A stretch of DNA of 64,000 nt from assembly GCF_000143415.4 (NCBI RefSeq), contig NW_003314323.1:748499-812498 (forward strand), in the 5' to 3' direction. Below, piece after piece: positions 13,895-64,000 of this stretch (the stretch's first letter is position 1; each line of letters begins with the position of its first letter). Source of the DNA: Selaginella moellendorffii. Lineage: Eukaryota; Plantae; Lycopodiophyta. Below the pieces are notes generated by a model, which saw only the letters and a program-made list of their open reading frames with translations, was not told where the DNA came from and made no database searches. The position numbers and the translations under genes were made by a program.

Positions 13895-15204
13895 AGCTCC
13901 ACAAAAGCCCTAGTTTTCATGGCTACTTGTTAATGGAAAATTCATAGAGTATAGAAGAGTGGCATTTGCTCATAAATAAACGCACAGGCATTCCCGTAGC
14001 TCTATCACCCACTGGGGTTCTGTCTTCACTGCGACAGTCCCAGTGAAGGACCCAGGATCAGGGATTTTGATCGAGCGACTAGTGGATGGTTTACATCGAG
14101 TCGTAGTGTCTTACGGCATTTGCCTCAGCTGGCATTTCTCTGTTTTTGTCGATGCTAGAAAGTTTCTTCCTCGGAAAGCCAAGAAAATCTCCTAAGAAAT
14201 CTCATCATCTGGGCTCAAATTCAATGTGGAAGTAAGCTAGCGAACGTTATATGAACTTATAGGAGCGCAAATAAGAATGCTGGCGACATCCCAATTAGTT
14301 CCATCCCTATCAAAAGCATTATGATCACATCCACAATTGGCGCGCAATAAAGCTCTTCCATCCCATGGATTTGGAAGGGCTCATAGCAAGCTTCCGAGCT
14401 GGCTAATATCTAGCATTGAAGCAAGCTTGAAAAGCTCCATCCCAGCATTCTGTTCGTCCCCGCCAGGATCTTACAGTCGATCCCTATAAGGCAAGTCCTG
14501 GAAAAAGATATAAATAAATAAGAAAAGCTCGTTCTTTTGAGCTTACGTTCACTCCAAGCCCGAACAATACCTGGAATGAGTTCCTCCCTTGTTCTTGGAG
14601 ATATAATCACAAAACCAAGTCTTTGGTATTTACCTTAGCCATCTAAAAAGACGAGTGCTCGTGAAAGTATCATACACACGACTGACGTGGACAGTGATCT
14701 CCATTACTGGCGCGAGCAAACCATTAGTTGGAAAAACATCAGGATGAGCTTACTTGACCTGCAAGAGGTCCAAAGAACAAAAAGAGATTGCAAAGTAGAT
14801 CCAACTTTTGACGAAGATGAGACACTAAAAGGTTTTGGCATTCAAGAGTGAAAGATCGAAGAATCTACAAGACCATTATCTAGAATGACAAGTACATGAA
14901 AACTTCTATCTCTTCCATCAGTTCTTTGCGGCAGAGCCTTTAGATCGAAGGATCCTTTTTGCATTGGAACCAGCGAGAAACTTAACTGGTGGTGATTCTA
15001 GATCCTCGCCAAGTGATAGAGCTGGACTGTGGCATGGCACGAGAAGAGCAGATAATTCCAAGGTGAATCTCATAAATAGATTCCCAAGAGAATGTACCAC
15101 TCGTCATGTTGCATGTCCGGCGTCTTGTTGAGATTGATTAGAAGAATTTCTCACAGCAAAGACGAATCCCTAGTTCGGCAATGCGGCGTGGAAGGGGAAT
15201 CAAA

Positions 15205-29603: not shown

Positions 29604-31746
29604 TGATTGCTGAGAGTGGCTGCAGGGGCATTCCAGCTCTTTGGGCTGGTGGTTCTACAATATGGATGAGTTGAGTGTGTCAAGTGGAAGATCTGGACTC
29701 TGGGTTCCAGTCCTGGAGGTTTTCTTGCACCTCTTCATCACTGCTGACTATTTCACGCGGCAGTGAGGTTGCTCCAACCAGCAAAGTTACAGTGGCCCAA
29801 CAGTATTGTCTTTTGTGCTCCTTTGCTACTACATTACACACAAGCTTGAAGTGGTGAGTTATCAAGATTTCTTGTGGCAAAGCGGTAAAAGAGCATTTAT
29901 TTCTTGGTTGCAGCTCATTCGGATGCCAGCCACTGAAGTGATGTATTTGGCAGAAGGAATTACATGTATGGCTTGTCTCTTTTCCTTTTCATTCCTAACC
30001 AGCCGTCTGTGCAGATCTTGTGTCACTCATGTCTAGAGTTCCCTGTACTTTCTCAGCGTGAACTTGTCTTCTGGATGCCCTTCTCCTGTTTGATGTGAGC
30101 AAGCAACTCTGCGTGCTCTTCTTCGCGTGGCTGCACCTCCAGGTCCAAGCAAACAAGCAGCCGCACGAATGGCTTGACGCTTTCATACCTCAAGCCAAAG
30201 CTGGCAGCAGGGGGTACCTGGGCAAACTCTTGCTCTGCTTCCTAGACACCGTGCATGCATACAGGTTTCAGGAATTCTTTCTGCCAACCAGGGAGAACAT
30301 CGACAACGTCTATAACGTTTGGTTCAAGGAACTCCTGGTGGTAGATGGCAATGGATCGATCTCACCCCCGGCATCTGCCAGGTGGTGGAGGTAAAATCCT
30401 TAGCTCAGAGACAGGCTTCTTATTTGTTTTTTTTTTTTTTTTGTTTTTTGGCAGGAGGTGGTGGCAGCAGTGACTCACACATTCGAGTGGGACCAAAGCC
30501 TTGTTGTACCTCTGGAGTGCTGGGTTCGAAGGAGCTCGCTCGTTTACCAGTACAGGCCTCGCGAGGTTTCATACTATATGGACTTTAAGGATGCAAGCTT
30601 GCAAATTGGCCGTCTGATCTACACTTGGACACTGACGAAAAAGGGGCAGCGCGACCAAGCTCCAGACGCTGTGCTCGACGGGCAAGTCGATCGTGGAGAA
30701 CGCACAGTCGGTGACAGCGGGAAGCAGCGACGAGCGCCAGCTCTACCGTGCCGCCCCTGCCGTTTTCGGCAAGGATTTTAGCGGCCATTTCGTGCAGCTG
30801 TGCAGGAACGCGCAGTGGGAGCCGGATGGGGTCCCTTGCTTGCAATCCGAGCTGGGAGAAATAAGGGGCTGGCATGGAGAGGGCTGATTTTAGTCTTCAA
30901 CTTCCAGCAGCATTACTTTGACGACGGCCATAAACAAATGGACGTTCGGTGGCATGGTCGTCTACATTGTTCACGTATGCACACTCTTTTCGTTGGAATG
31001 TGTTTCTGATTGTTTCCTTTTATCTTGTGTGTTGTTTTGCGCAGCTGATATTTGAGGATCACTTGGCCCTAGACATTGATCGCAAAGCGTCACAAGAATG
31101 TGAGTGACATGAATTATCTATCTTTACTTGGTGGAAGTATTTACTAAAGCTGTTTCTGTAGGCACGGTGGCTCTAAATAGTCACCCAAACCTTGATACAA
31201 TCTGGAGCAAGAGAGGCATTTTTATTGCATCAGATGCGACTAAGAAGAGGTGTCTAACTCTTGAGAAGTTGATAAACTCTCCCAAAATACAGGGGGCTCT
31301 GGGAGCTGGCGCTGATGAAATAGGCAATGCTATGGTCAAGGCGATTGTAGTTGGTGGTATCGGGAACACAAAGAGTTATGGTTTAAAATGGCGAAAAGGC
31401 TCATAGCATATGCAATTTCCAAAGGAATAATTTAAGAATATATTCTTCTTGGGTGCATGGATCTGAATGCACTTACTAGACAACTATTGGACTTGAGTTG
31501 CAACGAGAGTGCCACCACCTGGCTTCCAAAATCACCTGGTCCAGTCATTGGGCAGCATGCCAAGAGAGGCCTTTAAAATACAGCCAAGGGTTAGGGTTTT
31601 AGCAGGGACAACCCAATGCTGGAGATATGGCGCGATCTATGCCGGGAATGCTTTTCTTTGCTTCCTGGATCAGGGCGTGGAAGCGAATGTGATTGAGAGT
31701 AAAATGGGCGACGTCATCCGGGCATAGCAGAAAAAGAAAAGTCCGA
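29604..31746 (+). pseudogene. Unknown gene copy 2 (5'-truncated direct repeat of ~15473-17672)
   Basis: High identity to copy 1, e.g. LCVLFFAWLHLQVQANKQP and VAAVTHTFEWDQSLVVPLECW, with many indels. Confidence 0.85.
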
Positions 31747-32122
31747 ACTTATGGATGTCGCCAGCATTCCTATTTAAGTTCATATAACGTTCGCTAGCTT
31801 ACTTTCACATTGAATTTGAGCCCAGATGATGAGATTTCTTAGGAGATTTTCTTGGCTTTCCGAGGAAGAAACTTTCTAGCATCGACAAAAACAGAGAAAT
31901 GCCAGCTGAGGCAAATGCCGTAAAACACTACGACTCGATGTAAAAACATCCACTACTCGCTCGATCAAAATCCCTGATCCTGGGTCCTTGACTGTCCCAG
32001 TGAAGACAGAACCAAGCTCTACCTCCCAGTGGGAACGACAGAGCTACGAGAATGCCTGTGCGTTTATCTATGAGCAAATGCCACTCTTCTATACTCTTTG
32101 AATTTTCCATTAACAAGTAGCC

Positions 32123-34165
32123 ATGAAAACTAGGGCTTTTGTGGCGCTCCCAGAGCAGGGAGTTCTTCTCTACTACAAGTTCGTCACGCTGCCGGATCCC
32201 GAAGCGACCAGGGACTGGTTCGAGCGATCGTGTTCTTCGCTGGCGCTGCTGGGGAGGATACGGATTGCGCCCGGGGCGTCAATGTCACGGTATGTGAGTG
32301 GCATTCTCTGGAAATTCTTTGTGTTCTCACGGATTCTTGCTAGGTCGGAGGCAGCATGGAATCGCTGAGGGAGCACATCGATGCTGTTGCGAGGCAGGAG
32401 CTGTTCCAGGGATGCGATTTCAAGCTCGCTGCGTGCTCCCGGCCTATGGATCGCGATGCCGCTGCGAGCTGTGGTTTTGATTCCTTGTCCGTTCGTCTGG
32501 TTGAGGTAATTCTTTTCTCGCAAGTTCTTGCTCGAGCAAAGCTTTTTTCGTTTTTTCGGCTTTTTAGGAAATCGCGTGACGCTTGGTGTATTCCCTTCTC
32601 CATCGCTTGCAAATGCTGGGAAGCATCTATCGCCAGAGCAGTTCCATGGAATGCTCGACCAAGCAGGTTTTGGTTGTTTTCTTTCCAACTTACAAGATTT
32701 TCATTCGTGCAGGGAGCTTGAAACAAAGCAACGCTGCCCCCCAAGATACGCCAGTACAGTGACTTGCCTGCTTGGATAGACGAGCGCGCGGAGCAATTGC
32801 GCAACAAATCAGTACTGATGTATTTCTTTCTAAGTCGTTTCTTTCATTCATTGTGTTATATGCTTTTGCATTTGTTGCAGGTATTTCACTGGAGGTGTCC
32901 GGTGCGAGATGGCTTCTGCTTACATTCGTAGCAAAGGAGAGGAATTCGAGAACGTCTACCAGGTTGTTTGGTTTTCTCCTGTTTGTACGGTGGATTCTAA
33001 CCTCGTGCTACGCAGCTTTCTGGTGGCATTCAGCGGTATCTGGAGGCATTTCCTGAAGGAGGATACTTCCATGGGAAGAACTTTGTTTTCGATCATAGGT
33101 AGTGCATGCATCACTCTTACTCGGAAGCTGATAAGCTTTGGCTGGCAGGATATCAGTTCCATCGCTACAAGATAAAACTGTTGGCTGCTGCTATAGTTGC
33201 AAATCTCCCTACGATGACTATACTCCACGGCTCCGTTGCTCCATGTGTCGTATGCTGGTACTTCTATGCGAAAGTTGCAAGGTAATTCGTATATGATCTT
33301 TGTCTTCTCTTTACCTTGCATTGTGCTTTCAGGCGTCAGTGCCTTATCTCTGCGAGCTGTGCGCTGCTAATCAGCATTCTAGTGAACCAGTAGAATCAGG
33401 ACGTGATAAATGTGAGTGCTTGTCAAATTTTGATAGCAGACATATGACCCACCGTGAACAGGCTCGAAGTTAAGGATACTGTGCTTGCACGGCTTTCGTC
33501 AAAACGCATCAAACTTGAAGGGCAGGCTCGCATCGCTGTCGAAGAAACTCAGACGTACAGCCGAGTTCGTCTTCATAGATGCTCCTCACGAGCTTCCGCT
33601 GCTCTATCAACTTCTCGAGGACGAAACGAGGCAAGAACCTACAGCCCAGCCGCACAAGAAATTCGCGTGGTTAACCGATCCGGATGGTCCGAAGGCTAGC
33701 ACACAAACGTGGACTCCAGTACAGAAGTCTTTCAATCCCATGCAGTACCAAAAGCAAACGTCGGGTTGGAGCGAGAGCTGGGAGTACCTGGGACAAGTAT
33801 TGGCTGATCGCGGGCCATTCGATGGCGTTCTCGGGTTCTGGCAGGGAGCGGCCGTGGCTGCCATACTTTCTTCACTCAAGGATGCTGGACTGATCGACAT
33901 CAAGTTCGTCGTGCTGTGCTCGGGGTTCGTTTCGCCGGTGCTAGAGCAACAGGTGTTGGGAGGATTGATCGACTGCCCTTCGCTGCACATTTTCAGTGGG
34001 AAAACTGGCTATGACCGGCAAATCTCTTGCACGGAAAGCGAGAGATTGGCTGGGAAGTTCAGGCCTGACTCTCGAATGGTAGTTCGTCATGACTCGGGGC
34101 ATATAGTTCCCACTCGACCGGACTACCTCGAACAGTACTCCGAGTTTTTCAAGCAGTTTCTATGA
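32123..34165 (+). pseudogene. STR6 copy 2, disabled
   Basis: Original ATG lost by an 8-bp deletion, 1-bp frameshift at ~32275, ~70-bp deletion at ~32735, catalytic GFSQG changed to GFWQG. Confidence 0.85.
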
Positions 34166-34629
34166 CTTGTCTTTAAAGTTCGGACGAGGATTGTGACGAA
34201 CGCCTGCCCGCGCCCCGCAAGTTGGTCGAGCTAGAGATTTTTGGAGCGATCGTATGGATTGCGTACGGCCAGCCCTGTCTCTCCAATCGTGCCTGAAGCA
34301 GGCGAAGATGATCGCACAGATGATGCTAACAAATCTACATCGATCCATAAATTTCAGTGTGTCTTATAGTTGGCATCTTAATGTTTGACACAGTAAATAC
34401 TGGTAAATATGAATTAATAATTGCTTAAAAGATTTTAAAATTTGTGAGGTCCAAGCACGAAAAGGCCTTGGAATTGGAACTGAGTCCCTCTAGCACTAGC
34501 TTTGTATTAATCCATTTTATGGCAAAATATGCCTCTCCACAAGACTATTCAATCCAATGTCTGAGATTTAAGACTAAATTGTTTGAGGGTTTGAGCCATA
34601 AAAAAGGAAATGCTCCATAAATTTGAAGT

Positions 34630-36017
34630 CACTGTGGTCGACCGTTCCCCGCCAAAAGTATGCACGTCCATGTCTGCATGCTTGTGAAGCAAACCTACGA
34701 GAACAATTTCGGCATCGAAGTTGAGACCGAGTACTATGTGGATCGACTGTCTATAAAGGATCAGATTGTGAGGGACAACAGCAACGATAATGACCCTTTG
34801 ACGACGCACCAGACGAGAACACTGTGTCATACACTGGCAACAATGGCGGCGGTGTCAGCTCTTTCTACCACACCGCTGCTCTGGTGGTGTGGCCCAAGGA
34901 TTGCAGAATGGAGGCGCTATGCTACAACAGTGAAAGTGTACTGAAGTGGCTCGAGGAGCAGCACAAATGCGAGCCTGGCCGGACGAATGGGGATTTGGAG
35001 CGATACTTGACAAGTAAAGTGGGGTACAAGACGCATTTTGAAATTCTGCCAGATTTTTGCGTCAAGCACGACTGTCACGACGCAGCCTGCTTGGTCATGA
35101 AGAAGTGGGGGATGACGCATGGCAACAGCAGCACAGGGTATGGTTTCCGTACACTTGGTTCCTTTCCCGCTAGCAGCTTGGTCCAAGTAGCTAAAAAGTG
35201 GGGAGAGAGCAGCTTTCCTCACATGGAAGAGTTTTGGGAGAAGACATTGAATTGAAGAAGCTTTGTGGGAGAGACAAGCAGAGAAGCCCTACCCCGACAA
35301 AAGATATGGGCCCTATGGAAAATATTATTAAGTCAACTTTGCACAGCGAAAGGAAGGAAAAGCTGGCTAAGCTCCAGCACGAAGGAAGGAGAAGTTTTCT
35401 GGGAAGGGTGTTGTGACGCTCGAATCGGATGTCACTGCAATGGCTTTGGGAAGGAAGAGATTCATCAACGATGTTGACCTGAAGAAATCTATGGCAGTGA
35501 GATTAACAGTGCTGATGCGCTTGTGCTGCTCTTGTGAGGAAACTGGAAGATTAATTGGGGGCTCTTGGTTAAAATGAAAGAAGCAGCCGGGCTGTTTGGC
35601 TTGAAGAAGGATGAAAAGGTGACGCAGCTCTTCTCGGAACTTTTGTCACGAGCACTGAAATATAGTAGTCACAACAAGAAACTGGCTGAAGTTGCAATTT
35701 GGCTGGGCAATGAGGAAATGGTGAAAGTTGTAGTAAAGTATGCGAGAAGTGGTAATTTTAACGATGAAAAAGACGATAGCAGCTTGATTGAGAGTGCCAA
35801 GACATGGGACGATGTTGCTAGAGACGGGTTGAAGAAGGTGATCAATGCTAAAATTTGCTACTTTTTGGGCAATGGAGATGAAGAGGTGAGTTGCAGCGAC
35901 AGGAGCGATGATGAAGTAGATGAAGAAGACGAGGAGAAAGAAGAAGGAAACAAACGATGCAAACTAAACCCGAGGGCTGAGCGTGTCGAATATGAGCAGA
36001 AAAGGATAGAAAACTAG
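34630..36017 (+). pseudogene. 2OG-Fe(II) oxygenase family relic copy 2 (middle plus C-terminus; oxygenase domain deleted)
   Basis: SYTGNNGGGVSSFYHTAALVVWPK (family-typical YTGNxG...YH.AAL..WP); 3' part nearly identical to 9972-10590. Confidence 0.65.
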
Positions 36018-37744
36018 GGTGCCACGATCTGGAGACTGCGTAAGCTCTTGAACAATTTTGCTTGATCCTTCAAACAGCATATAATATTGCAGCACTTGCA
36101 ATAAGATTCTCAAAGGCTGAAGTGTCGTTAAGTAAAACTCCATTGAGGAATTGCGCAACGACACATCTGCGCATCGGATCTCGGCCTCCGGCCAAGTGAA
36201 GAAGAGTTTTGCTTGCAGAAAGAAGCCATCTGCTGTTCAAACGCACTGAGCTCGTCATCCCATCTCGGTAGGCACAATATCAAAAGCCGGAGCACAACTC
36301 TCTAGTGTCGTTTGTAAATAGGACTCGGTTGCCGTCACTTTCGATTTCTGGAAGTGCTTGCATTATATAGAGAAATCCCACGAGATCCATACTGTGAATC
36401 TGTGAAGCTTACATAATGTATTGGCAAGTAAAATTGCAAGTGATCATAAGCACACTATATGACGAAACCGTGCTAGCGATCAACGTAAGCATCTGGACTG
36501 TAGATGCAGCCTGGAAGGGACTGTTTCAGAATCTAAGCATCTGGCTAGATTGTTGAAGTTTTGGATTATGTTATCGACTTGGAAACTTGTAGGGAGCCAG
36601 CCTGTGTCTAAGGCTGGATTTGTTGCTCCTCTTGGTCCTGCTCAACTGCCATGGGCTCCTGTTCTGATAAGAAAACTGCATTACTAACCTCGTGTTGGTA
36701 TGTTTCAGATGATCTAGTTGCATGCTTGACATACTTCAACAACGCCTTGGCGCCTTAGTTGCACCTTTTCTTTTGAGAGCATGCAAAGAACATCTTCAAG
36801 CTGTCATGACTATAGTTGATTATGGATTCTCGAGAGTTGATTCTTTCTGTTCTTTCAATACTGTGAGAATCAGATAAACACATAACCATTATAGTTGACT
36901 CTGGATTCTTGAGAGTTGATTCTTTTTGTTCTTTTAAAACTGTGAGAATTGCGATTGACTTTGTTGTTGTAAAAAGAAAATCCGTATAAATAAAATGACT
37001 TTTATGTATAAAACATAGCATTATTTAACTGCAATGCAACAAAAAGGAAGTGGAAAGCTATCTCGCTTCTTTGCTTGCAGCCAGCTCAGCAAGTCTTTTG
37101 AAAAAAAACTAACTTTGCGAAGAAGTGATGGTGATTTCGATTTTTCTGGACACGAATACCTTCGGATTTCGAATTCAGTGTTAAAAAAACACAGGCATAG
37201 AATATTTTACAAATATCCAATTCTTATGCCCCACATGGGGCATCATGCCCATAGCAATGACCCATGCTATGTATGGAATGGAGCCATTCATGGCCAATAA
37301 GCCCATGCATTCTAGCAAGTTGTTAATGTTGCAAACCAAATGGACAATCAACCAAATTCCATACCATATTACCTTATCTAGGGCATTATGTTTTCACATC
37401 TTGCTTTTGGCATTCATGGCAAAAGAATTGAATTATCCTTTTTTGGCACACCTCTTTTAACATAGTGTTCATAATAAATGTAAGTGAACTTTATTTAGCT
37501 CCATTGCAAAGCCATGGATATATATTGTCTGGAGTAATGTCTCTAATACATTTTATTGAGTTTATCCTTCGTTACCATTGATTTCCAGTATAGTTCTCTC
37601 AACATATTAGTTTTGTACCATGATGCTTAGAAGATTTGCATATGACTCAAAAGTAGGTTGAAGTCTAACCAATTCGATGAATTGGTGGGGCTCATACTTC
37701 AATTGTGTACTACGCAAAGGTGCATAGTGTTGATGTTTAGACTT

Positions 37745-49977: not shown

Positions 49978-52900
49978 TTAAGAAAAGGCATTAACATCAG
50001 TCATAAAACTCTTCAGTCGATCAACAACATCAAAATCATATATCTGAAACTTCAAAACCCACCAAACAATACAATCAATCAAGTTCTTCCGCTTCAATAA
50101 TGAAGTAATAGCAGCATAATCACTTTCAAATAACGTCCGAGAACCATGTAGATATCCATGAAGTTTCTCAAAACCCCAAACTGCTGCTAAACACTCTTTC
50201 TCTGTTGTGGAGTAGTTCACCTCCACTAGTTGTAATGTACGGTTTATATATGCAATGGGATGGCACTGACCAGGCACACTCACCTTCAAGACCAATAACA
50301 AAAGCATCAATGCGCAAAATAAAAGGTCAAGTGTAGTCAAGATATACCAAAACTAGAGGAGTCGTCAATAGCTCTTTGAGATCCACGAATGCCCACTCAC
50401 AATCCGGAAACTAGATGAAAGATGACATTGATGACTTCAGCAGCACTCGCAATGATGTAGTGTGATTAGAAAGGTGATCCACAAAATGGCCGAGATACTG
50501 CACCTTGACTAGGAAGTGTTGCATATCATTTACACACTTCAGAATAGGGAACTTTAGAATAGTTACAAGTTTATTAAAATCAACTTGTAAACCCTCACAG
50601 GAAATATGGTACCCAAGATAAATTGTGTCCTTAGACCCAAACACGCACTTCGACTGCTTTAGCTTTAAACCAACATCTCGTGGCCGATCCAACACTTTAC
50701 AAACATCACAAATGTGCTCTTTCCACATCCCCTCTGAATGGATTAAGACATCATCAATGAAATCAATAATCACCTTTGGCATATCGCAAAGAATTTCGTC
50801 TATCATCCACTGGAAAGTTGCTAAAGCATTGTTCAAACCAAACGGCATCACCAAGAACTAGTACAAACCAAATAGTGTATAAAAAGTAGTCTTAGGAATA
50901 TTTTCTTTGGCTATCGGTACTTGCCAATACCCAAAAGCAAGATTTAGATTGGTGAACTAATGATTTCGCCCCAGACGATTGAAGAGATCAACAATATGAA
51001 GAAGAGGGTACACATATGGGATTATCACTTTGTTTAACAAACGATAATCGATGCAAAAATGAATACTCCCATCAAGCTTCATCACAAGATGAAGTTCACA
51101 CGCCCAAGGACTTCACAACTTTCGAATAACACCCTTCTCCAACATTTCCTTGATATTTGCACGTAAAATTTTGATCTCTTTGGGTGACCAACGACAAACA
51201 GAAACCTTGATTGGACAAGCATCCCTGTTTGGAACCGAATGACATGTGGCAATCTTGGCCCTAAACGATAGATCAATTTCAAAGAGATCAAAATACTCCT
51301 TCATGAGCCGGTCAACTGCTGCAACACAAATATTGTCGAAGGGATCGAAAAAGGGAAGAGCAGAACAAGATGGAAACATAGGAGGAAGTAGTGAGGGGAC
51401 AAAAGTAATAGAAACAGAGGTAAAAGCAAAGGGACAAAGAGGTACGGAAGTGAGAGGAATGGATGAAATATATAAAGAAGTATGAGATAAGGGGGAGAAG
51501 CCTCAAAGTCACATTTGGCATGATTACACTACAACTAATCTATACCAAAGATGAAGTCAAAAGCCCTACTCAGCACCACCCACAATGATTGTAACCCAAG
51601 CTGAAAATTGCCCACACGCACAACTAAGTTTGCCTCATCCCATGTACATGTATATGTATGGCCGTTGCTATAAAAATGAAAACTGGCTCCACCACACGAC
51701 ACAAGTGTAGAAAACAACATGTGGCAAAAAATTGAGCAATAGAAAATAAACTCAAACATATATCAACCAATACAGACAAAATAATAGGAGACCACTTGTT
51801 ATAAAAACAAGCTTGGAAAGTAAACACTGGATGAATTGGTGCCGAGTGAACCCCTTGATGATACTCCCGAAAAAAAGATGGAAGGGTCATTGACTTATTC
51901 ATGCAAAGTCCCTCTATTACTCGTGTGACTCTTTGTTTCCTAAATGCATCTCGATGTCCAGATCTTCCACTGCAACAGCACCAACAGGACGTTGTTGATG
52001 CCAAAGTCTCCACCTAGGAAATGATGGCCGCCAATCTGGAAAATGCAGATAACACTGATAAATATGACCAACTTCATCACATGCCCAGCAATGAACATCA
52101 CAGCCATGACCACGGCCTCGCCTTTGTCCTTGGACTTGAGCAGCAACAGCATCAACCTCCATTGGAATAGGACCATCACTCATAGGAAGTGGAGCTGAAA
52201 GACATGCAACGAGAAGTGGAAGAGGTGACGTCTCATAACGTTGTGCCAAGCGAAGAGCATCGTCAAAGGTGGCAAGAGCAATTGCATGCATAAGTCCGAC
52301 AAGATCTTGATGAAGTGTTGGCCACAACATTCTTAGCTCAAGCCACTCTGATATATTTGGCTCCGCACGAAGCAAGAAGTTTCGGAAACGAATGCCAAAT
52401 TGCATCACCGACTCAAATGACCCTTGACGAAGACGATGCAATTGTTAGAAGGCATCATCACAATCATTGGCATGTCCAAATGTAGGTTTGAAGACGTCTG
52501 AGAGAACACTCCAATCCCCACGAGTGGCTATGCTCAAACCATTATACCAATGCAATGCTGTCCTTTGGAGACACGTGGGAAACTTACACAAACATCAAGC
52601 ATCATCCCAAGAATGATATGTGGCAATCACCGTGAAGTGATCAAACCAATGGTACACATCATCCCTGGCATTCATGGCACGTGGTACAACTCCTCTTGCT
52701 CTTGGTGCCAATCCTCGCATTTGGCCGGAATTCTTTCGCGGGAATCCTACCATTAACTAAGTTTAGTTATTCAATTGCAATCGCATAGCATCAAACAATT
52801 GTATTAACTGCTGCTCCAAAGTCAAAGGAGCAGGAGATTGCTAATCTGCCATGAAAATGAATGAAATGGAAGAGCAAAAGAAGAGAAATGGAAAAAAGCT

Positions 52901-53247: not shown

Positions 53248-53274
53248 CTTGGACCTCACATTTCTTTTTCCTTT

Positions 53275-54456
53275 TTTTTTGGTTTGTTTCACAAGAGGTG
53301 GTGGCAGCAATGACTCACACATTCGAGTGGGACCAAAGCCTTGTTGTACCTCTGGAGTGCTGGGTTCAAAGGAGCTCACTCATTTATCAGTACAGGCCTT
53401 GCGAGGTTTCATACTTGATGGACTTTAAGGATGCAAGCTTGTAGATTGGCCGTCTGATCTACATTGCAGCATGACCATGTCGAGCTCCAGATGCTGTGCT
53501 CGACAAGCAAGTCGATCGTGGAGCACGCACAGTCAGTGACAGTGGGAAGCAGCGACGAGTGCCAGCTCTACTGTGCCGCCCCTGCCGTTTTCGGCAAGGA
53601 TTTTAGCGGCCATTTCGTGCAGCTGTGCAGGAACGTCCAGTGGGAGCCGGATGGGGTCCCTTGCTCGCAATCTGAGCTTGGAGAAATAAGGGAGCTGGCA
53701 TGGAGAGGGCTGATTCTAGTCTTCAACTTCCAGCACAGAGTTCTGGAGCATTACTTTGATGATGGCCATAAACAAATGAGTATTGTGCTGTTCGGTGCCA
53801 TGGTCGTCTACATTGTTCACATATGCACACTCTTTTCGTTGGAATGTGTTTCTGATTTGTTTCCTTTTTTCTTGTGTGTTGTTTTGCACAGCTGATATTT
53901 GAGGATCACTTGGCTCTAGACATTGATCACAAAGCGTCACAAGAATGTGAGTGACATGAATTATCTATCTTTGCTTTGTGGAAGTATTTACTAAAGCTGT
54001 TTATGTAGGGATGGTGGCTCTAAATAGTCACCCAAACCTTGATACAATCTGGAGCACAAGAGGCATTTTTATTGCATCAGATGCGACTAAGAAGAGATGT
54101 CTAACTCTTGAGAAGTTGATAAACTCTCCCAAAATACAGGGGGCCCTGGGAGCCAGCGCTGATGAAATAGGTGATGCTATGGTCAAGGCGATTGCAGTTG
54201 GTGGTACATATTATGATTGGGAACACAAAGAGTTGTGGTTTAAAATGGCAAAAATATTTAGATGGAGTTATGAGAGGCTCACTGCATATATTATAACATA
54301 TGCAATTTTCAAAGGAATAATTTAAGAAGTGCATGGATCAGCACGTCATTGACCTCAGGCCTTTAAAATACAGCCAAGGGTTAGGGTTTTAGCAGGGACA
54401 ACCCATTGCTGGAAATATGGCGCGATCTACCGGGAATGCTTTTCTTTGCTTATGGC
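53275..54456 (+). pseudogene. Unknown gene copy 3 (internal fragment ~16395-17576), cut on its right by the DNA-transposon-like element
   Basis: Identity to copy 1 ends abruptly after TTTCTTTGCTTATGGC. Confidence 0.85.
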
Positions 54457-55529
54457 GGGGATGGTCTAAAGTTGAGTTGAGCTCAATTCAGCTCAAGTCA
54501 ATGCTAGTCAACATAGTCAACCATAAGTTTTATAAGGAAATATTAAGTCAGAAAAATGTTATTCTTTGGTGAACTTGAAATTTATGAGTTTAAGTATCAA
54601 TGGTTCAGAGAGATTTTTATTTTTTGAATCTTTCTATACAATTTCTAGAATTAGAAGTTCGTCTGAACCCATAGAAATTTTTGGGCTTTATTGGTCCCAA
54701 ATAAAATGGGAATATTGAAGTTCGAATGAACCAGAAAATTTCTATTGTCCATTTCAACATTTTAACATTTCAACAATTGACCAGAAATATATAAATAATT
54801 CGAAACACTAATTCACTCGTTCATTCTTTAGGGTTTACAGAGATGGGAAGCAAGGAAGACAAAAAATCTGTAAGTAGTTCTAGCATACAGAAATGTGAGA
54901 ATGTGAATTTTGTTTCACTACCACAATCTCCATATTACACGCTTGGTCCTTATTACCCATCCGGAAATGTGGAGACCATTGTCACTATTGATAAAAATGC
55001 TCCTATTACTTCCGAAACAACAATCCAGAGCAAGAGAAAAGAAGAAATGGACAGCACAGTGGAAAGCACTAATAAATCCACTCTATAAACCTTTCAATGG
55101 CTTTTGTAATCCACTAAAATATTATAAAAAAATGTAAGTTTTTTATATATATCTTATTCCTTTTGATATGTTTTGTCTTTCCAAAGATATATGATGTAGA
55201 CAAATCAAAGAATTAAATCTATATATGATTTTGGGATTGAAAGGTAATCTTGCAAAAAGGCATACTCGCGTGCTTGTGTATATTCGCTATTATTATATAT
55301 GGCAGGCCAACTATATAAAATAAGGCTACATATTAATTATATGCTAGTTTTTAGCTTCTGAAACCCTATAGCCACTTGTTTCTCATAGTAGGTTGTAATT
55401 ACTAAGACTGACAATTATCATTCACTATAGTGTCATGTCATAATAAAACATCATTCCCGAGATTGAAATATAGTATATTAATGAGAGAATTCTTATTGCT
55501 AGGAAGTTTAATTCTTCTTGTGTGTTGCA

Positions 55530-56084
55530 ATGGTTAGGAAGAAGTTTACTTTTGGTCCCGAAGGCCTCTCATATGAGTCTCCACCTCCATCTCCAATCTC
55601 AACCAATAATCCACCTTCACCTCTACGCAACAATCCTCCTTTTCATTTTGAGGGTTGTTGTGAGGCTCTTCCATTTGCGACCTCGAGTGCAACTGAACAA
55701 AAACTCCTTCCTTATGATGTTGTTAAAAAAGTTGGATTGCCTCCAATGCTTCAAGAGCGATGTCAATATTTTCTTCAAGATCTTGCTCCAGATATGGCAG
55801 GGGAGCTTAATGTAGATACATATTATCTTCAGTGTCCTATATGCAACTTTTATTTAAACAAGACAGATGGTTGCATGGGTTTGGTAAATTTTATTGAGCA
55901 TTGTCGCAAATGCCCAAGAGCGGGTTTGGAAGGTGTGCACGCGTGGATGTATAAGAAAATCAAGAAAGAATTAAAAACACACAGCTATTATGATTTCATG
56001 GTGGAGAACAATATTCCATTGGTGAACACTGCATCAGTAAGTGCTAAATATGGGATATTTAGGCCACCCTTTAATGTAATGTGA
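55530..56084 (+). CDS. Small Pro-rich protein with C2H2-type zf-XS-like zinc finger, copy A (intact, 184 aa)
   Basis: YLQCPICNFYLNKTDGCMGLVNFIEHCRKCPRAGLEGVHAWMYKKIKKEL; ATG at 55530; a paralog follows in tandem. Confidence 0.6.
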   Translation: MVRKKFTFGPEGLSYESPPPSPISTNNPPSPLRNNPPFHFEGCCEALPFATSSATEQKLLPYDVVKKVGLPPMLQERCQYFLQDLAPDMAGELNVDTYYLQCPICNFYLNKTDGCMGLVNFIEHCRKCPRAGLEGVHAWMYKKIKKELKTHSYYDFMVENNIPLVNTASVSAKYGIFRPPFNVM

Positions 56085-56342
56085 AAGTCATGCATAGTTT
56101 TTTCAAAAGGTTAATTCTTTATGAGTAAAGTGGAGAATCTTATATTTTCAAGAATGATATTATTCTAGCATGTATAAAGATATTATTATATATACAAGTG
56201 GTTCTGACACTGTTATAATTCTGAAGTCCCATTTTTGAGACTGATAATTTAAACTTTCAAGAACCCCTAGATCTTTTCTTAATATAAATACCAACAAGGG
56301 ATGCTTTCAACATTGAAATTTCAGTTTGTTTAGAGTGTAGGA

Positions 56343-56891
56343 ATGGCTAGGGAAAATGCTATTGCTACTCGCACTTGACCCCCATGCATCTCATATGAGT
56401 CTCCACCTCCGTCTCCAACTTCTACCAACATTCCACCCTTCCCTCCATACATCAATCGTTGTGAGGCCTTTTCTTTTGTAGCCCCAAGTGTGACTGAACA
56501 AGAGATCCCTCTTCCAGATAATGTTCTAGATGTTGCTACTAAAGATGGATTGCCTCATGTGCTTCAAGAGCGATGCCAAATGTTTCTTCAAGATCTTGCT
56601 CCTGATATGGTTGAAACTTTTGAAAGAATGAACACATATTATCTCCAGTGTCCTATCTGCTACTTTTATTTAGATAAAACGGAAGGCTGTATGGGTCTAG
56701 AAACTTTTCTAGAACACTGTCACAACTGCCCAAGAACTGGTGTGGAAGGTGTGCATAAATGGATGTATAAGAAAATCAAGAAAGAGTTAAGAACACACAA
56801 TCATTATCATTTCATGGTGAGAAACAATATTCCGTTAGTAAATCCTACACCCACAAGTGCTGAATATGGTATTTTTAGGCCATCCTACTGA
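56343..56891 (+). pseudogene. zf-XS-like zinc-finger paralog copy B with premature TGA at codon 12
   Basis: ATG 56343 is in frame with YESPPPSP and QCPICYFYLDKTEGCMGLETFLEHCHNCPRTGVEGVHKWMYKKIKKEL; TGA at 56376-56378. Confidence 0.6.
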
Positions 56892-57322
56892 AAATTCCAG
56901 CCACTAATAATTCTTACACTATGATATTATTCATCCCCCCCCACCCCCCCCCCCCCTCTCGCCTTTTTTTTTTTAACAAAATTGTATTACCTATAGATAA
57001 TAAACTGATAATACTAGTAATTATGAATTTTGACAGACTGACACTGTAACTTTGTCATCTCTGACACTAACACTGTCTCTATCACTGACACTATCACTGT
57101 CGCTATCTGCTACACTGACACTGTCAGTGTCACAATCATTATCACATTGACATGTGACACATCTTTCTCATTGCATTCAATTGTCTTTTAATGTATCATT
57201 AATAAATAGATTTTTCATACCACTCCTCAATTTACATATTGCATATGATGTGCCATGCATACCTAGGAAGACTTCTAGAAAACTAAATATATATTATTTA
57301 TAAGTTTTTAAAACATCATAAA

Positions 57323-60300
57323 TTACCTCCTAGAAGCAACTGATAGAGAAGGACGAAAACCTCGAAGATGGCATTTGAAGAACTCATGTTCTTCAATCGC
57401 AAACACCGATCTACCAGAGTCACGTGCTGCTTCGACCATCGAACCACTACCTGCTGTGCAATCGATGACAACACCTCTAGTTGGGCAATAAAGCTCAAGT
57501 AGGACATGCATCGCCGATGGAGATCGGAACCGATACCCAGACAATGTGTTGCGGATGTCGTCGTCTATGAGATTTGGTATGATGTCAGTAAAGCTGTCAT
57601 ACCCTGGCAAAACCCTTGCAGCACGCTCGCTATCACGAAAACCGTCATTTTCTTTTCTGCAAAACACATGGTAGGTCCACATCATAACCTGAATAATAAA
57701 ACTTTAGAGACAACCAAAACAAAAAATGATTTCTTACCTTCTCTGGCATGCCTAGGACACCTTTGGTCTCGACCCCAACACTATCCATGATGCATCCGGA
57801 AGAGAACCTCTTGAAGTTGACTCGACTTGCATACCTCATAAGGCAGGACATCCAATGGGGGTCATTCGGGAGAATGAAGGCAACTTGACCGGTTGTGTGA
57901 AGGAGAATTGCTGCCAAAAGGAATGCATCCTTCAAGTGGTCTTTAGTCAGGTTGTTCCAGCTTGGGACATCACCATTAGCGTCTGGAAGACCATCTGGCA
58001 TGTCAAAGAGCATGAAGTTTGTGCTCTTGAGCGGTCGCCTATGGATCTTCTGACAAAAGCGCTCCCACTTTTGCTGGATAGCCATATTCTCAACATCCTC
58101 CTCAAAAGATGCCATCAATGAACTATAGGAGCCAATAAAGATCCCAACTTCACCACGGAATGCCACTGGAGATACAGGGCGAATCTAGGGGGAGAAGACA
58201 AAGATAAGATGTGAATTTAAAAAAAATTTACATACCGTCATGTGGCGTGTGGTAGATGTAAGTTCCTCCAAGTCCTCTTCTCGAGCATCAAGACGAGCTG
58301 GAATGAAGTTACTCCCGACAGTTTTTGCTGCAACCATTTGAGGAACTAAGAAAAGGAGAGAATAAAAAGAAATATACCTTGAGAAGTTCCTCGGTTACGG
58401 GGACGTCTTGGACGATCATCATCACTGTTGACTAATTCCTCCAGATGTGGATTTGCTCGCTTTCGTCGAGGTAGAACTTCTTGGACGTTCTGGTTCTCTT
58501 GCTCGACTTCGTCTCGAAGAATCTCGTTCTCACCGCCATCTTCACTCTGCTCGCCATTGGCACCAACAGGGTCGACATTCTCATGGCCATCATCTTCGTC
58601 ATCATTGTTGCCTCTTGCAGCCTCATGGTGGGTTGGTTCATAATCTGGCATCTCCAATTCCCAAGGACAAGCGCGCTTTATTGCTGCTGGAAACTTCATT
58701 GTTGTCGGGTACATGCCTCCATCTCTCACACCATGCCTTAGGAGGCGTGTGCATACCGGTGTTTCGAGAGGAACGCTTCTATATTGGAGATACCTATAAT
58801 AGAATATAAACAATTGAGTATAGTTGAGAAATTGTATGTTACCTGAAAGCCGCTCGACGCATGAAGTAAGGTTGGCCAAGTTGTTTATCAAATGGAGTCG
58901 TGCTTGTGGCCTTCTTTGGCAGCCAGTCCTCTCCAAGTTTTGTAAGCTCAATGGTGACGAAGTCCTTAAATGGAAGTTGCTCAGGATCATCCCCTATGAA
59001 AGGCGCTAGAAACATCTCCCCTTCATATACAGTTTGTGAAATGTAGACGGTCCTCCTCATCACAGTCTCCATCATACTGTCCAAACCTTTTTCTCCTTCC
59101 CTGAGTCTACTATTGAGGTCATTCAGAATGTGTATCTGTTCCTCATATGTAAGCTTTGACTTTGAGATGTTGTAAATAATCTCATCTGGAGTCTTGCCCA
59201 CTAAAAAATAACTTTTGTGAGAACCTTCATGTAAATATAAACAATACTTACTTTCATAACAAGCAATCTCTGTTATAATATCGAACCACTCCTTTGGGCG
59301 TCGAGGGTCAGCCACACTAAGTAATTTCTTTACCTTTGTCTTCTTTGTGCTGTTGATTTTCTTGTCAATTGCAGCTAAATGCTCTGAGAGTTCTTGATCA
59401 TTTTCAGCTCGATGCGACTGTGCATATGCATCTTGCTTAACCTTCACCAATGGCTGAAGACAACACAAACATTCTATGATAAGAAGTATACTTAAAAGAA
59501 CATACCTTACTCCACACAGCTGTCATAAAAGCCACTGGATTCTTGTACCATCTATTGGCATCCTGACGACCTCGTTGATGTCGAATAAGTGATGCTAAAT
59601 CATCACCATAGTGGCTGCGGACTGCATCCTCGTCGAGATTGGCAAGAAACCGGATCTGCTCGATATCATGTACTAGGCTTTGTTTCTGCACTGCAAACTG
59701 TCCCAATCTGCAAAACATAAATTGTTAGAAGTGATTGAAGAAGGAGAGGTACTTACGCATTAATTTTGTGGCAAGCTATCACAAGCCTTGCCAAATCTAG
59801 AGATCCTCTCGCGTGTACATGTCCAACCGGAACATTGATGTGATAGATAGGATCGTCTCGGAAGCATTCTCGGATGCACTTCATCCACGCACACCAGCGA
59901 TGATTCCCGTCGATAATGTAGAACATTTTCCCCACAAATTGTTGAGTCTCAGGATGGCTCATAAGCTTGTTGTCAAATTCGCGGGACTTCATTTTCCAAA
60001 TGTCATCCCAATCCCTCTCGATTTCCGGTGACACCGAGAGGGTATTTGTCGTTCCTGGCTTGAAAACCGAAACAAGGAACATACCTATGTTTGTCCCAAG
60101 GCCATTCTGTTTGTACAGACTATAGATGTCCATGTTGACGAAGTGCGGTGAAGCAGACCGAACGATGCTTGTCTGAGTGAATCGACATAGTGGGATTTCT
60201 CGGATCATGTGCCCCGGGCCTTCCCACTTGAGAGACTCCAGAGTCGTGTGAATGGCCTTCTCTTTAGTTCTCAAAATTGTCTCTTGGAAGCGCTTGTCGA

Positions 60301-61537
60301 CAATGTGTTCAGGTAGCTCCACTTCTCTTTCAGCTTCAGCTACACCTCCAGTAGCACCATTATCAGATCTAGCCCCCGACTCGGGCCCAACACCGCCATC
60401 AGGCGCACTTGGGCACTGCTCCGTTTCTGCCATATTTTGTGAATATGTTAAGAGTAGTGGCATTTGTGGTTGTGGCAGCAATGGTGGTGATGACAATGGT
60501 TGCGTTGGTGGTGGTGATGACAATGGTTGTGCTGGTGGTGGTGATGATGGTGGCAGTGGTGGTGGTAATGGTGGTGATGACGGTGGTGGTGGTAATGGTG
60601 GTGATGACAGTGGTGGTAATGGTGGTGATGAAGGTAAAGGTGGCGGTGGTGGTAATGGTGGTGGCGGTGGTGGCGGTGGTAATGGTGGTGGTGGCATCGA
60701 TGGCGGTGGTGGGGGTGCATGTGGACTGGAGCTATGTGGTTGGGAAGACGGTAGAGTTGTCGCTGTGGAAATCTCTATCTGAAGGTCAACTTGATTGTCA
60801 TCCTGGATCTCATCTTCCTCATGTCTTCTCTTTGATCCAACATCCCTCTCCTTTTGTAGTTGCTTCCGTTTCTGAAAATAAAAAAAACTCATTATAAATT
60901 ATAAATGCATAAGAAGAGGGGAACAGGGCGTGGGCTCGGTGCACGCCTCCCCCAAGCACCTTGGCCGGCCCGCGCCAAGACTGCCCGCGAGCCGGCCTTG
61001 GCGCTTGGAGGTGGGCCGGTTCGCTGGCGTACCGGCCCTCGTGGGCATTTGGCGCAAGCACTTGGCGCCTTTGCCAGCCAAGCGCCTTGGCCAGCCTGCG
61101 TGGACTTGGCCGGCCCAGGCGGAGTGCCCAGCCAAATGCCCGGCCTGGGCACTTGGCAGCGGCGGTGCTGGGCAGCAGTGGCCCTAGGCAGTGCGGCGCT
61201 GGCGTGGCGTGGCGTCGGCACGGCAGCAGCGGCAGGCAGCGGCGGCATGGCAGCGGCGGTGCTGGGCAGTGGCGGCACGGACAGCGGCGGCATGGCAGTG
61301 GCGGTGCTGGGCAGGCAGCACTGCGCTGGGCGTGGCATGGCAGTGGGCAGCGCTCGGCAGCCCTGGGCAGTGGCGGTGCTGAGCATGGCATGGTGTGTGC
61401 AACGTGGCGGCGCAGAGCATGGCGTGGGCCCGGGGGTCCTGGGCCCAGGGGCCCTGGGCCCGGCGGCGCTGGCCGGGGAGGAGAGGGAGTGGAGGAGAGG
61501 GAGTGGAGAAGGAGGAAAAACTTACTCTTGGCGGCAT
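57323..61537 (-). CDS. ParB/Srx-like domain plus beta-class N4C/N6A DNA amino-methyltransferase fusion, 8 exons, 1092 aa
   Basis: Exons 61537-61526, 60871-59757, 59707-59506, 59453-58843, 58793-58378, 58345-58236, 58184-57738, 57688-57323 all have GT-AG ends and compatible phases. Motifs: MPPRKRK NLS, poly-Pro, FYIIDGNHRWCAW, FMLFDMPDG, RSPSAMHVLLELYCPTRGVVIDCTAGSGSMVEAARDSGRSVFAIE. Confidence 0.8.
60470..60715. repeat. (GGT/ACC)n low-complexity tract encoding poly-proline in the ParB-MTase
   Basis: Directly visible; explains the overlapping poly-G/V/H ORFs. Confidence 0.9.
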
Positions 61538-61580
61538 TCTGTTCCCGCAGTCACTCTCAATCTCCCGCGATACTTCCTGT

Positions 61581-61620
61581 AAAACCCTAACGCCGGCGGC
61601 TGCCCTAACCCTAACCTAAC
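61581..61620. promoter_or_regulatory. Telo-box and telomere-like repeats just upstream of the ParB-MTase ATG
   Basis: AAAACCCTAA at 61581-61590; CCCTAACCCTAACCTAAC at ~61603-61620. Confidence 0.5.
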
Positions 61621-62343
61621 TTTCATCACAGCCGTTCATCATGGATGCAGTAAATCTTCACTGTACAATAAATAATAAATCTAGCACTGTACAATTTCTA
61701 TTCCGCCCTAGATTTGATCACGTGACAAAGTCCTTTTGAATTGTAATTTAATAATGGAGGTGTGCTCTAATATGACTATGTCATAATGTGAAATAATGTC
61801 ACAGACGCATGTGTTGAATTGATCACAGTACGAAATTGTTAGAAAATATAAGATTATTAAATCGTAAGGTGTTATTTCCAAAGTAATGTATATAGATAAT
61901 TTACTATAGGTGCTAGATGGTAGTACAAAGATGGAATATATTTAAATGAGTTCAGAAGAATATGATGATTTCTAGCTTTAATGAAGTACTGAAAATATGT
62001 ACAATATTTAATTTATTTGGTAACAATTGGTTGATGGTAGATCCTAGAATAAAATCATTCCTATCTTTCATATTATGGCACATGCTTGATGTGATATTTC
62101 TTTCCGTTCTACCAAAAGTTAGTGCATATAATAAATTTGAGTATGTTTTTGAATTCAATGTATATAGACAATTAATATTGTACAACATAGTCCTATATAC
62201 TTCATACAGAATTTATTATAACAACATTATTCGATGTTAGATCCTAGAATAAAATCGCCCTATCTTTTCACATAATGGCATAGCACATGTGAGGTGACAT
62301 TTCATTATAAAAGTTCAGAGTTCCAAAACCTAAAGGCAACAAA

Positions 62344-64000
62344 ATGGAGGGCTTCCTTTTGCATTACCAAGATCACCCACCGCTTTCTATCTCCCAGAGT
62401 CTTATTTCAGAAAGTTTTCTTTGCCGACATTTCGATCTTTCTCTCGGTTCTATTTCATTGGAAGCTGTGATTCGCAACAACATTGGTGTAGTTGAACGAT
62501 CGGAGTTTCTTCTTTCGGGTGTAGGTGAAGGTGGACAACATTGGGATTTGCAACATTCCAAGTCGAAAGAGATTCGAGTTTTTGGATCTCCAATCAAAGT
62601 GCGAGGCTGTGATCCTGCTAAAGTCAATGTGAAGCAAGAGTCGGTCGTCATCATTTCTTCCTCTTCTAGTTCTAGTGGAGATGTTAGTCCAGTGCGAGCC
62701 AAGAATTTCCAAACTCCAACTTCACTGATATTCCAAGCTGTTTGCAACGCTTTCCAGTTTTCCCGCCTCTCTATCGATGTGCGTTCCTTTCTGCATAGGC
62801 TCGTTAGCGAGCTCCCATCTACATACAATGGCAATATCTTCTTTGAACTACCACCTCTTGTCATCTCAAAACGAANNNNNNNNNNNNNNNNNNNNNNNNN
62901 NNNNNNNNNNNNNNNNNNNNNNNNNNNNNNNNNNNNNNNNNNNNNNNNNNNNNNNNNNNNNNNNNNNNNNNNNNNCACACATTTCCAACATTTCGAAGGC
63001 ACAGTGTCCATGGTTCATTGTGGTGGGTATTTGGATTGTGTGAATAAAGCATGCAATCAAGAGCGTGGTAAAAACTCCATATTTTTTGAAGGATCTGCAA
63101 CCAATCCTCCCCTCTGTGACACCATTGGTGTTGGATTCAAGTGTCGGTTTTGCAAGAATGCTCCATTGTGTCGTGCCATCTGCGGGGCCAAGATGTACTA
63201 TTTTCTTCCACGGGATGGAGAGGTTGGTAGAGCTGCAGTACATATTGGCACGCACACACATCCAATGCAGGAAGGGATACAAAGGAGTTCAGTCAACCAT
63301 TTCAAAGATGCAGTGCAGATAGAGACTGTGAGAAACTCATCTGCAACTCCGAAGCATGTTCAGAAGATAGTGCTCAAGGATTTTATCGCAAATACTTTAC
63401 TTGATCCGGACTACAAGAATACTCAACTGGATGAGGCTAGCTTGCAGGAGTTACTACGACATGTGCAACCTGCAACTAGCCTTAGAAGGTATGAAAATAT
63501 TATTACATACTTTTCAATAATATCTCTCTTACATTTTGTTTTATTTAGGATAAAGTCTTGGATGTGTGAATCTCGAGAGGGGAAACTCCAATCAAAAATC
63601 GACTCAATCCTTGAACTAAAACGGACTTGTCCCTATGAGTTTATCCATGGGAGTTTATTTCCAGATCAAGTCGTTAGTGAGCAAGAGCGCCCCTTCGTTT
63701 TCAAAATGTCTACCATGGGCCCTGCCTCTTGTGTGGATCTTGTTTCCCGAATGGATATGTCTGGGTCAAGTGACCTTGCTAATGCATGGGTACATTTTGA
63801 CCATATGGAGCGGGTGGCAGGTTGGACAACCATGGGAGCTCATGTGTATGATCCAAGGTAGTTTTTTTTCTCATTATCTTAAAATGGTTTTAAACATTGC
63901 ACTTTTCACAGGCTACGTTGTAACTTGACAATTGCAACGGTAGAGTTTAAAGTACAAGACCAGATGGCTCAAGAAATATTTTGGAAGTCCCTCTCCGACA
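62344..64000 (+). CDS. Mutator-like DDE transposase with GCM/WRKY-fold Zn domain; continues beyond window
   Basis: CGGYLDCVNKAC...CRFC...CGAKMYY...HIGTHTHP, then WVHFDHMERVAGWTTMGAHVYDPR/LRCNLTIATVEFKVQDQMAQEIFWKSL (first catalytic Asp region). Introns about 63489-63549 and 63858-63911. Confidence 0.65.
62876..62975. other. Assembly gap (100 N)
   Basis: Run of exactly 100 N inside the transposase ORF. Confidence 0.99.

Follow-up and report, generated by a model that had tools for sequence, protein, structure and literature searches.

A probable Mutator-like transposon with a divergent ParB/methylase-fold gene in Selaginella moellendorffii, and its relatives in seed-free land plants

We analyzed a stretch of 64,000 nucleotides from the lycophyte Selaginella moellendorffii (contig NW_003314323.1, positions 748,499 to 812,498 of the forward strand), hereafter called the window, and focused on its last 9.5 kb, positions 54457 to 64000, as a candidate DNA transposon. 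Two divergent genes make up the right part of this region: a transposase gene on the plus strand, which runs off the window, and on the minus strand a gene for a long accessory protein with a ParB-like part and a methylase-like domain. Two short Cys/His-rich open reading frames (ORFs) lie further to the left, next to a sharp junction with repetitive DNA.

The divergent gene pair

The first predicted exon of the transposase gene (62344 to 63857, +) codes for an N-terminal part, which is followed after an assembly gap by a Cys/His region resembling a DNA-binding domain, with the pattern CRFC...C...HIGTHTHP, and by the start of a DDE core (WVHFDH...GAHVYD). A 54-nt GT-AG intron (63858 to 63911) follows HVYDPR. 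The next exon (63912 to 64000, +) is cut by the window end; it reads LRCNLTIATVEFKVQDQMAQEIFW, matching the homologues, and could be aligned by eye with the metagenomic protein P0001 and with an ORF of the Riccia locus L009. The reading frame stays open up to the end of the window.

The gap consists of 100 N (62876 to 62975) and lies inside the transposase ORF. The pieces to its left (62344 to 62874) and right (62977 to 63858) both align to P0001, in order, and the transposase is 31% identical to this protein; the matches include YNGxxxFELPxxV on the left of the gap and, on the right, the Cys/His region through WVxFDH...HVYDP. When compared with another Selaginella moellendorffii locus (L007), the left piece was 39-48% identical and the right piece 56%, both on one strand. 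Because the two pieces align in order and on one strand, both sides of the gap belong to the same gene and are in the right orientation. In L007, 78 nt separate the aligned ends of the two pieces, in one frame; by this measure the window gap replaces about 18-25 codons, and the in-frame reading across the 100 N is an accident of the placeholder.

Beyond the point where the window ends, GFMxDxAxAxxxAVRxVF...FHW follows in the homologous loci, which have a CxC...CxH finger at their end (L002 and L009); a D...D signature is readable in the aligned sequences as well. We take FMxDxAxA...FHW and CxC...CxH to be the signatures of the Mutator-like element (MULE) DDE core and of the SWIM finger, respectively. 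Language-model features assigned a 511-aa Riccia homologue to MULE with a score of 0.95, and nine of its ten best family matches agreed; the window transposase piece gave MULE/FLYWCH/GCM leads. On the basis of these features and the sequence signatures, a level below that of a hidden Markov model match, we call the transposase Mutator-like.

The accessory gene was modeled by picking GT-AG introns that join long ORFs. It is predicted to run on the minus strand from 60892 to 57323, in six exons separated by introns of 49, 52, 49, 212 and 49 nt, and yields an uninterrupted ORF of 1052 aa. Exon 1 (59757 to 60892) codes for a Pro-rich N-terminus and a domain of predicted ParB/Srx fold (about 59756 to 60223), which contains the motif IIDGNHRWCAW. 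Exon 2 (59506 to 59707) and exon 3 (58843 to 59453) are followed by an acidic, low-complexity exon 4 (58378 to 58793), the least certain part of the model. The methylase-like domain is split between exon 5 (57738 to 58165), where DMPDG (57990 to 58004) replaces the DPPY of motif IV, and exon 6 (57323 to 57688), which contains motif I, VVIDCTAGSGS (57440 to 57472), and the stop codon.

A first-pass annotation of the locus had proposed an intact ParB-methyltransferase gene facing the transposase head-to-head across about 800 bp. The uninterrupted 1052-aa predicted ORF and the divergent arrangement agree with this proposal, but the methylase reading came out weaker, as discussed below, and the two start codons (60892 and 62344) are 1451 bp apart. 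The shorter figure resulted from counting spurious ORFs within a block of 74% GC.

A search of 1.84 billion representatives with the ParB-like part (210 aa, 59756 to 60385) found 152 relatives. The 20 named ones are all from Selaginella moellendorffii (50% identity), the liverwort Riccia sorocarpa, or the ferns Adiantum capillus-veneris and A. nelumboides, and each of these genomes carries several members. No match was returned by a word-indexed protein search with the ParB ORF over the 208-663 aa range, or by an exact look-up of eight window ORFs in a collection of 15 billion proteins. We modeled the ParB-like part with AlphaFold2 (AF2) from a 55-sequence alignment, at a predicted local distance difference test score (pLDDT) of 88. 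In Foldseek, the top 36 matches of this model were all ParB, Noc, KorB or Srx (sulfiredoxin), with E-values of 0.016 or worse. In VIA-align, the top 13 rows all belonged to the ParB family (ParB, Noc, KorB or PadC), and the match to Caulobacter ParB had a Z of 8.5, where about 8 is borderline if taken alone, with a root mean square deviation of 2.9 Å over 95 residues. By these models, the part is predicted to have the fold of the ParB N-terminal domain.

At the sequence level, the same part falls outside ParB/Srx, both by Pfam ParBc and by the GERRxR box. Its ParB box reads DGNHRW (family consensus VWDGNHRLxAW), not the GERRxR of CTP-binding partition ParBs, and is nearer to the DGxHR of ParB-like nucleases and Srx. 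Single window pieces had no match among PDB sequences. In two fern gene models, P0106 (A. capillus-veneris) and P0098 (A. nelumboides), the ParB-like part is annotated as fused to an NIF/FCP1 phosphatase domain or to the Gag of a retrotransposon; the surrounding DNA is rich in transposons, and the fusions are probably chimeras of annotation.

In the C-terminal exons, the sequence ...FMLFDMPDGLP...VVIDCTAGSGSMVEAARDSGRSVFAIEE... has motif IV ahead of motif I, which is the order of the beta class of amino-methylases. The same order, seen in the window as DMPDG upstream of VVIDCTAGSGS...FAIEE, was found in Selaginella and Riccia. The S-adenosylmethionine (SAM)-binding motif I (FxGxG) of the beta class is also present: the window, Selaginella and Riccia sequences all retain its G-x-G and the acidic residue that follows strand 2. 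For structural comparison we used a model of the Riccia homologue P0154 (residues 900-1207). Its 44 best Foldseek matches were all beta-class N6/N4 DNA methylases, among them M1.HpyAVI (the best, E 1.7e-10), CcrM, M.MboIIA, M.PvuII, rotifer N4CMT and M.RsrI. The model of the Riccia homologue thus points to a beta-class fold. The methylase-like domain has kept this fold, and probably SAM binding as well. Neither the ParB part nor the methylase part had a tblastn match in 50,697 phage records, and hence there is no sign of a recent prokaryotic or phage origin.

Relatives of the pair and related designs

Six land-plant loci were fetched via the ParB-like gene alone: one from Selaginella (L007), three from Riccia (L006, L008 and L009, representing two families), and two from Adiantum (L010 and L012). 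In all six, a transposase homologue lies upstream on the opposite strand. Identity between the window and Selaginella is 56% for the transposase, 44% for the ParB part and 55% for the methylase part; the corresponding values for Riccia are 30-32%, 32-34% and 26%, and the identities of both genes drop in parallel with distance. L006 and L008, which come from different Riccia chromosomes, share a 10.8 kb unit that contains both genes, is 96-98% identical and has sharp ends. The ratio of nonsynonymous to synonymous substitution rates (dN/dS) between these two copies is about 0.85 over 633 codons, which fits neutral decay after insertion and is uninformative on function. The Selaginella copy is decayed, and the family is multi-copy in both Riccia and Adiantum.

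The first-pass annotation had treated the transposase and the ParB-like/methylase-like gene as one transposon module, and had named a single-copy syntenic host gene as a finding that would speak against it. The ParB-like gene is multi-copy in Riccia and Adiantum and hence not a single-copy host gene, and the same divergent pair in six of six loci, together with the repeated 10.8 kb unit, supports the module; from the last two observations, the view of the accessory gene as transposon cargo holds. We consider it likely that positions 54457 to 64000 represent the left portion of a Mutator-like DNA transposon that is large and apparently intact, one of a family that extends across seed-free land plants and carries a divergent ParB/methylase-fold accessory gene. 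Of these components, the pairing of the genes, its conservation, the multi-copy state and, at the level of models, the two folds are directly demonstrated by the data above.

Several results weigh against this interpretation. Pfam MULE (PF10551) and SWIM had no match for the window pieces or the homologues, and Pfam ParBc had none for any family member. In profile searches of PDB sequences, the 55-sequence ParB profile found no ParB, and the family profile of the methylase part found no methylase. The methylase model has a pLDDT of only 50 and derives from a Riccia homologue that is 26-33% identical to the window protein, and the six-exon structure of the accessory gene is a prediction from GT-AG sites and ORFs only. 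The terminal inverted repeats and 8-11 bp target site duplications by which MULEs are recognised were looked for at the ends that the two Riccia copies of the 10.8 kb unit have in common, and none was found. Finally, the spacer between the two window genes lacks a clear array of one palindrome and has only a few dissimilar imperfect ones; the count of three for CCAAGCnCCTTGGCC in this spacer was made post hoc, the motif having been chosen after it was seen.

Two further observations concern the relatives. The 10.8 kb unit common to the two Riccia chromosomes closes with a 179-aa ORF (L006, 15255 to 15794). In a eukaryotic contig from ENA (contig_565, our locus L011), a ParB-like plus methylase-like gene (6078 to 6470 and 10412 to 10705) has no Mutator-like transposase match in the 5 kb upstream, and this gene may be paired with another type of transposase.

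The locus had also been put forward as a candidate new system, but the design has already been published for algal transposons (PMC12477816; bioRxiv 10.1101/2025.02.11.637652). In Ectocarpus, the 21.5 kb Sola1 element Sola1-1_Ec32 carries, opposite its transposase, an accessory gene for a 1104-aa protein with ParB-like and N4C/N6A methylase parts, and its authors propose that this protein binds and modifies its own element (PMC12477816). Our element likewise appears to be a large DNA transposon with a ParB-like and methylase protein of about 1100 aa (1052 aa in our model) encoded opposite the transposase. As far as the published description allows comparison, the difference lies in the transposase and the host, which are Sola1 and a brown alga in the one case and Mutator-like and a land plant in the other. 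One protein with ParB-like and methylase-like parts, encoded opposite a transposase as in the algal design, is predicted in the window; the divergent order recurs in all six loci, and in Riccia both genes lie inside the repeated 10.8 kb unit.

In Bostrychia, Plavaka elements carry accessory genes with ParB and methylase domains, and inverted-repeat arrays lie beside the ParB-domain gene (bioRxiv 10.1101/2025.02.11.637652); giant Plavaka and Mutator transposons in Chondrus are mentioned as a citation in the same preprint. These red algal elements resemble ours in the combination of a transposase with ParB-like and methylase accessory domains. The arrays also have a counterpart beside the ParB-domain gene, clear in the Riccia and Selaginella relatives, whereas the window has only imperfect, dissimilar palindromes. 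In the red algal elements, however, the ParB-like domain is fused to a 2-oxoglutarate (2OG) oxygenase (PAG3) and the methylase to SET (PAG2), whereas in the window the ParB-like and methylase-like parts are in one protein.

Phage and prophage ParB-Tls methylases, as well as chlorophyte Dam-type methylases fused to ParB and a helix-turn-helix (HTH), have been reviewed (PMC4738411). They share the pairing of ParB with an amino-methylase. The window gene differs in that it has introns, lies in a eukaryotic transposon, has a non-canonical motif IV, and shows no similarity to phage records. VANDAL elements of Arabidopsis, which are Mutator-like, carry VANC anti-silencing proteins that act on the elements' own sequence motifs. 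The likeness, a Mutator-like element with an extra gene, is an analogy only, as VANC has neither a ParB nor a methylase fold. Basidiomycete KDZ transposons carry TET/JBP genes (Iyer et al. 2014, as cited in PMC12477816) and so also link a DNA transposon to the gene of a DNA-modification-type enzyme, but the enzyme is a dioxygenase and the transposase is of another family. Marchantia DN4MT1a/b and rotifer N4CMT are host genes with demonstrated N4-methylcytosine (4mC) activity (bioRxiv 10.1101/2021.02.12.428880; PMC8885841); compared by fold only, they are alike in having a beta-class N4/N6 methylase fold in a eukaryote, and the window protein departs from them in its DMPDG motif.

In the literature searched, we found no report of the land-plant family, which is absence of evidence only. 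The design is thus a known one, described for brown, red and green algal transposons, and what is new is its land-plant, Mutator-like member. That transposons may bring along a DNA-binding and DNA-modifying-type protein of their own has been recognised in algae in recent years; the locus described here, taken with its relatives, shows that the same design is widespread in liverworts, lycophytes and ferns, on a Mutator-like backbone.

The left end and the Cys/His-rich ORFs

A repeat of about 1.2 kb occurs in the window as three direct copies (16355 to 17571, 30406 to 31663 and 53260 to 54456). The first two align onward for about 100 bp or more beyond the point where the third ends, the copy ending at 17571 continuing ...TTGATCGTGAATCCTGGAT. 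The third copy is cut short at 54456, and unrelated AT-rich DNA starting GGGGATGGTCTAAAG follows from 54457. Since the two other copies run on together and the third stops, the break at 54456/54457 is real, and the sharp junction described in the first-pass annotation is borne out. The repeats are probably long terminal repeats (LTRs) of retrotransposons, the third being interrupted at 54457. A gag-like ORF with a CCHC knuckle (51917 to 52441, -) lies near the repeat copies. In view of this ORF, the break fits an insertion into an LTR-like repeat, with 54457 as a candidate terminus of the element. The window would then hold the left 9.5 kb of the element, its right end lying beyond 64000.

From the candidate terminus to 55517 extends a candidate left terminal region of 31% GC. 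Within it, the 10-bp palindrome TTGAGCTCAA starts at 54477, and the motif GAAGTTCGnnTGAACC occurs twice (54654 and 54717); neither count is above chance. A search of the whole window found no further copies or termini of the element, and the profile of observed over expected CpG showed nothing decisive.

Next to this region lie the Cys/His-rich ORF 1 (55518 to 56084, +; 188 aa), an orphan, and its paralogue ORF 2 (56490 to 56891, +; 133 aa). Their proteins are 70% identical. The dN/dS between them is 0.24-0.26, at a dS of about 0.7 over 128 codons, which indicates that they are real coding paralogues. The first-pass annotation had listed them as two tandem, silencing-related zinc-finger genes. 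The two coding paralogues stand, but the zinc-finger label rests only on a C-x2-C...H-C-x2-C pattern: Pfam had no match, and no homologue was found in 5.8 billion proteins within the length range searched. IBR-like leads from a language-model atlas were weak and below recognition level, and we rejected them as evidence. We saw nothing that links the ORFs to silencing, and they have no relatives in the elements of other species. Accordingly, the expectation that the gene types would recur elsewhere in the same order held for the transposase and ParB-like pair in Selaginella, Riccia and Adiantum, but not for these ORFs, which have no counterpart in the elements fetched from the three genera.

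Probably, the two Cys/His-rich ORFs are additional, lineage-specific genes that this element family carries as cargo. A less probable alternative, to which we still give some weight, is that the pair is not cargo and belongs to host DNA or to another element with a boundary between 56892 and 57322, or that 54457 is a rearrangement point and not a terminus. The missing homologues, both near the Selaginella, Riccia and Adiantum elements and in the protein search, would agree with this, as would a (ATCACTGACACT)n-like microsatellite at 57057 to 57145, which separates ORF 2 from the 3' end of the ParB-like gene. However, the ORFs fall within the one break that the flanking repeat shows, and their low GC resembles that of the element's other non-coding parts.

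The catalytic motif, the spacer and the accessory protein

Motif IV of the methylase-like domain reads DMPD in the window, NLPD in Selaginella, DLPT and DMPS in Riccia, and DVPF and DFPI in Adiantum, with the consensus D-h-P-x-G. The canonical form, (D/N/S)PP(Y/F/W), was found in no member examined. In Pfam, N6_N4_Mtase (PF01555) scored 21.3 bits for window exon 6, matching profile positions 165-221 only, and 23.7-26.2 bits for the Riccia members; both lie below the cut-off of 26.7 bits. This sub-threshold match was the only one that Pfam gave for all window ORF pieces. The working 4mC or N6-methyladenine (6mA) enzyme envisaged in the first-pass annotation is not supported by the family-wide non-canonical motif and the Pfam scores, and to judge from the sequences, canonical amino-methylase catalysis by this domain is doubtful.

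We regard it as unlikely that the C-terminal domain is an active amino-methyltransferase that is guided by the ParB-like part to place 6mA or 4mC on its own element, and so controls transposition or evades silencing by 5-methylcytosine (5mC) and RNA-directed DNA methylation (RdDM). Such an activity would be in line with the beta-class fold of the family, with the retained motif I G-x-G and acidic residue after strand 2, and with the self-modification proposed by the authors of the algal work (PMC12477816). Moreover, three residues of motif IV, its D, its second P and the G after it, are conserved from liverwort to fern, a distance over which such conservation suggests constraint, and one fern member reads DVPFG, that is, with an aromatic residue. 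On the other hand, the first Pro and the aromatic residue are absent in nearly all members (DMPD, NLPD, DLPT, DMPS, DFPI); the aromatic one stacks on the flipped base and, to our knowledge, is present in all active amino-methylases characterised so far. The Pfam scores under the gathering cut-off argue in the same direction.

Still less probable, in our estimate, are two further-reaching ideas: that the D-h-P-x-G domain is an active enzyme, unusual in its chemistry or its target, and places 6mA or 4mC on the element's own palindromes, or that host amino-methylases of land plants, for example the N4-cytosine methylases specific to Marchantia sperm, were domesticated from this family. If either were true, these MULEs would be epigenetic parasites that mark themselves and are conserved in bryophytes, lycophytes and ferns alike. 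With the catalytic motif changed throughout the family, it is inadvisable to annotate such genes as DNA methylases; the change also raises the question of what role a SAM-binding but probably non-catalytic methylase fold may have for a transposon.

We propose instead that the accessory protein of the Mutator-like element binds the element's own DNA and acts on it in cis. Its most likely targets would be the palindromes that recur in the spacer of the gene pair and are clear in the Riccia and Selaginella relatives, and it would most likely control the divergent promoters, the assembly of the transposition complex or the chromatin of the element, and not perform canonical methylation. The window copy looks intact, with its 1052-aa ORF and a transposase frame that stays open up to the window end, and it is therefore a usable start for asking what the protein does to the element. 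It is highly improbable that the pair represents a host module, domesticated at a single locus, and not a mobile element: both genes do look intact in the window copy, but the family is multi-copy in every genome examined, near-identical 10.8 kb units lie on two Riccia chromosomes, and the Selaginella copy is decayed.

The spacer of the window pair consists of two parts. A block of 72-74% GC (60920 to 61600) contains degenerate direct repeats, imperfect palindromes and the three copies of CCAAGCnCCTTGGCC, at 60952 to 61092; it is followed by AT-rich DNA upstream of the transposase (61601 to 62343). In the latter, a direct repeat of 75% identity (62010 to 62103 and 62210 to 62306) lies upstream of the transposase start codon and may be a promoter or a duplicated binding site. 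The GC-rich block sits where the Riccia and Selaginella elements have palindrome arrays. The Riccia spacer holds nine copies of a 21-bp palindrome, TTCCGGCGAGnCTCGCCGGAA, which occurs nowhere else in 23.8 kb (0.01 expected), and in the Selaginella spacer there are five or six palindromes of 28 bp, related to one another and spaced about 100 bp apart. The palindrome array is a feature of the family that is not clearly present in the window copy.

Some smaller features were also seen in these spacers. Telobox-like AAACCCTAA / CCCTAACCCTAACC motifs (window, 61575 to 61620; L007, 8960 to 8990) lie at the edge of the GC-rich block, and the Selaginella spacer, too, has TAGGGTTT twice. Elsewhere in the window, two inverted segments of about 5.4 kb (8856 to 14259 and 31775 to 37162) are 93-99% identical and about 18-28 kb apart; they are either one element present as two oppositely oriented copies, or the product of a large inverted duplication.

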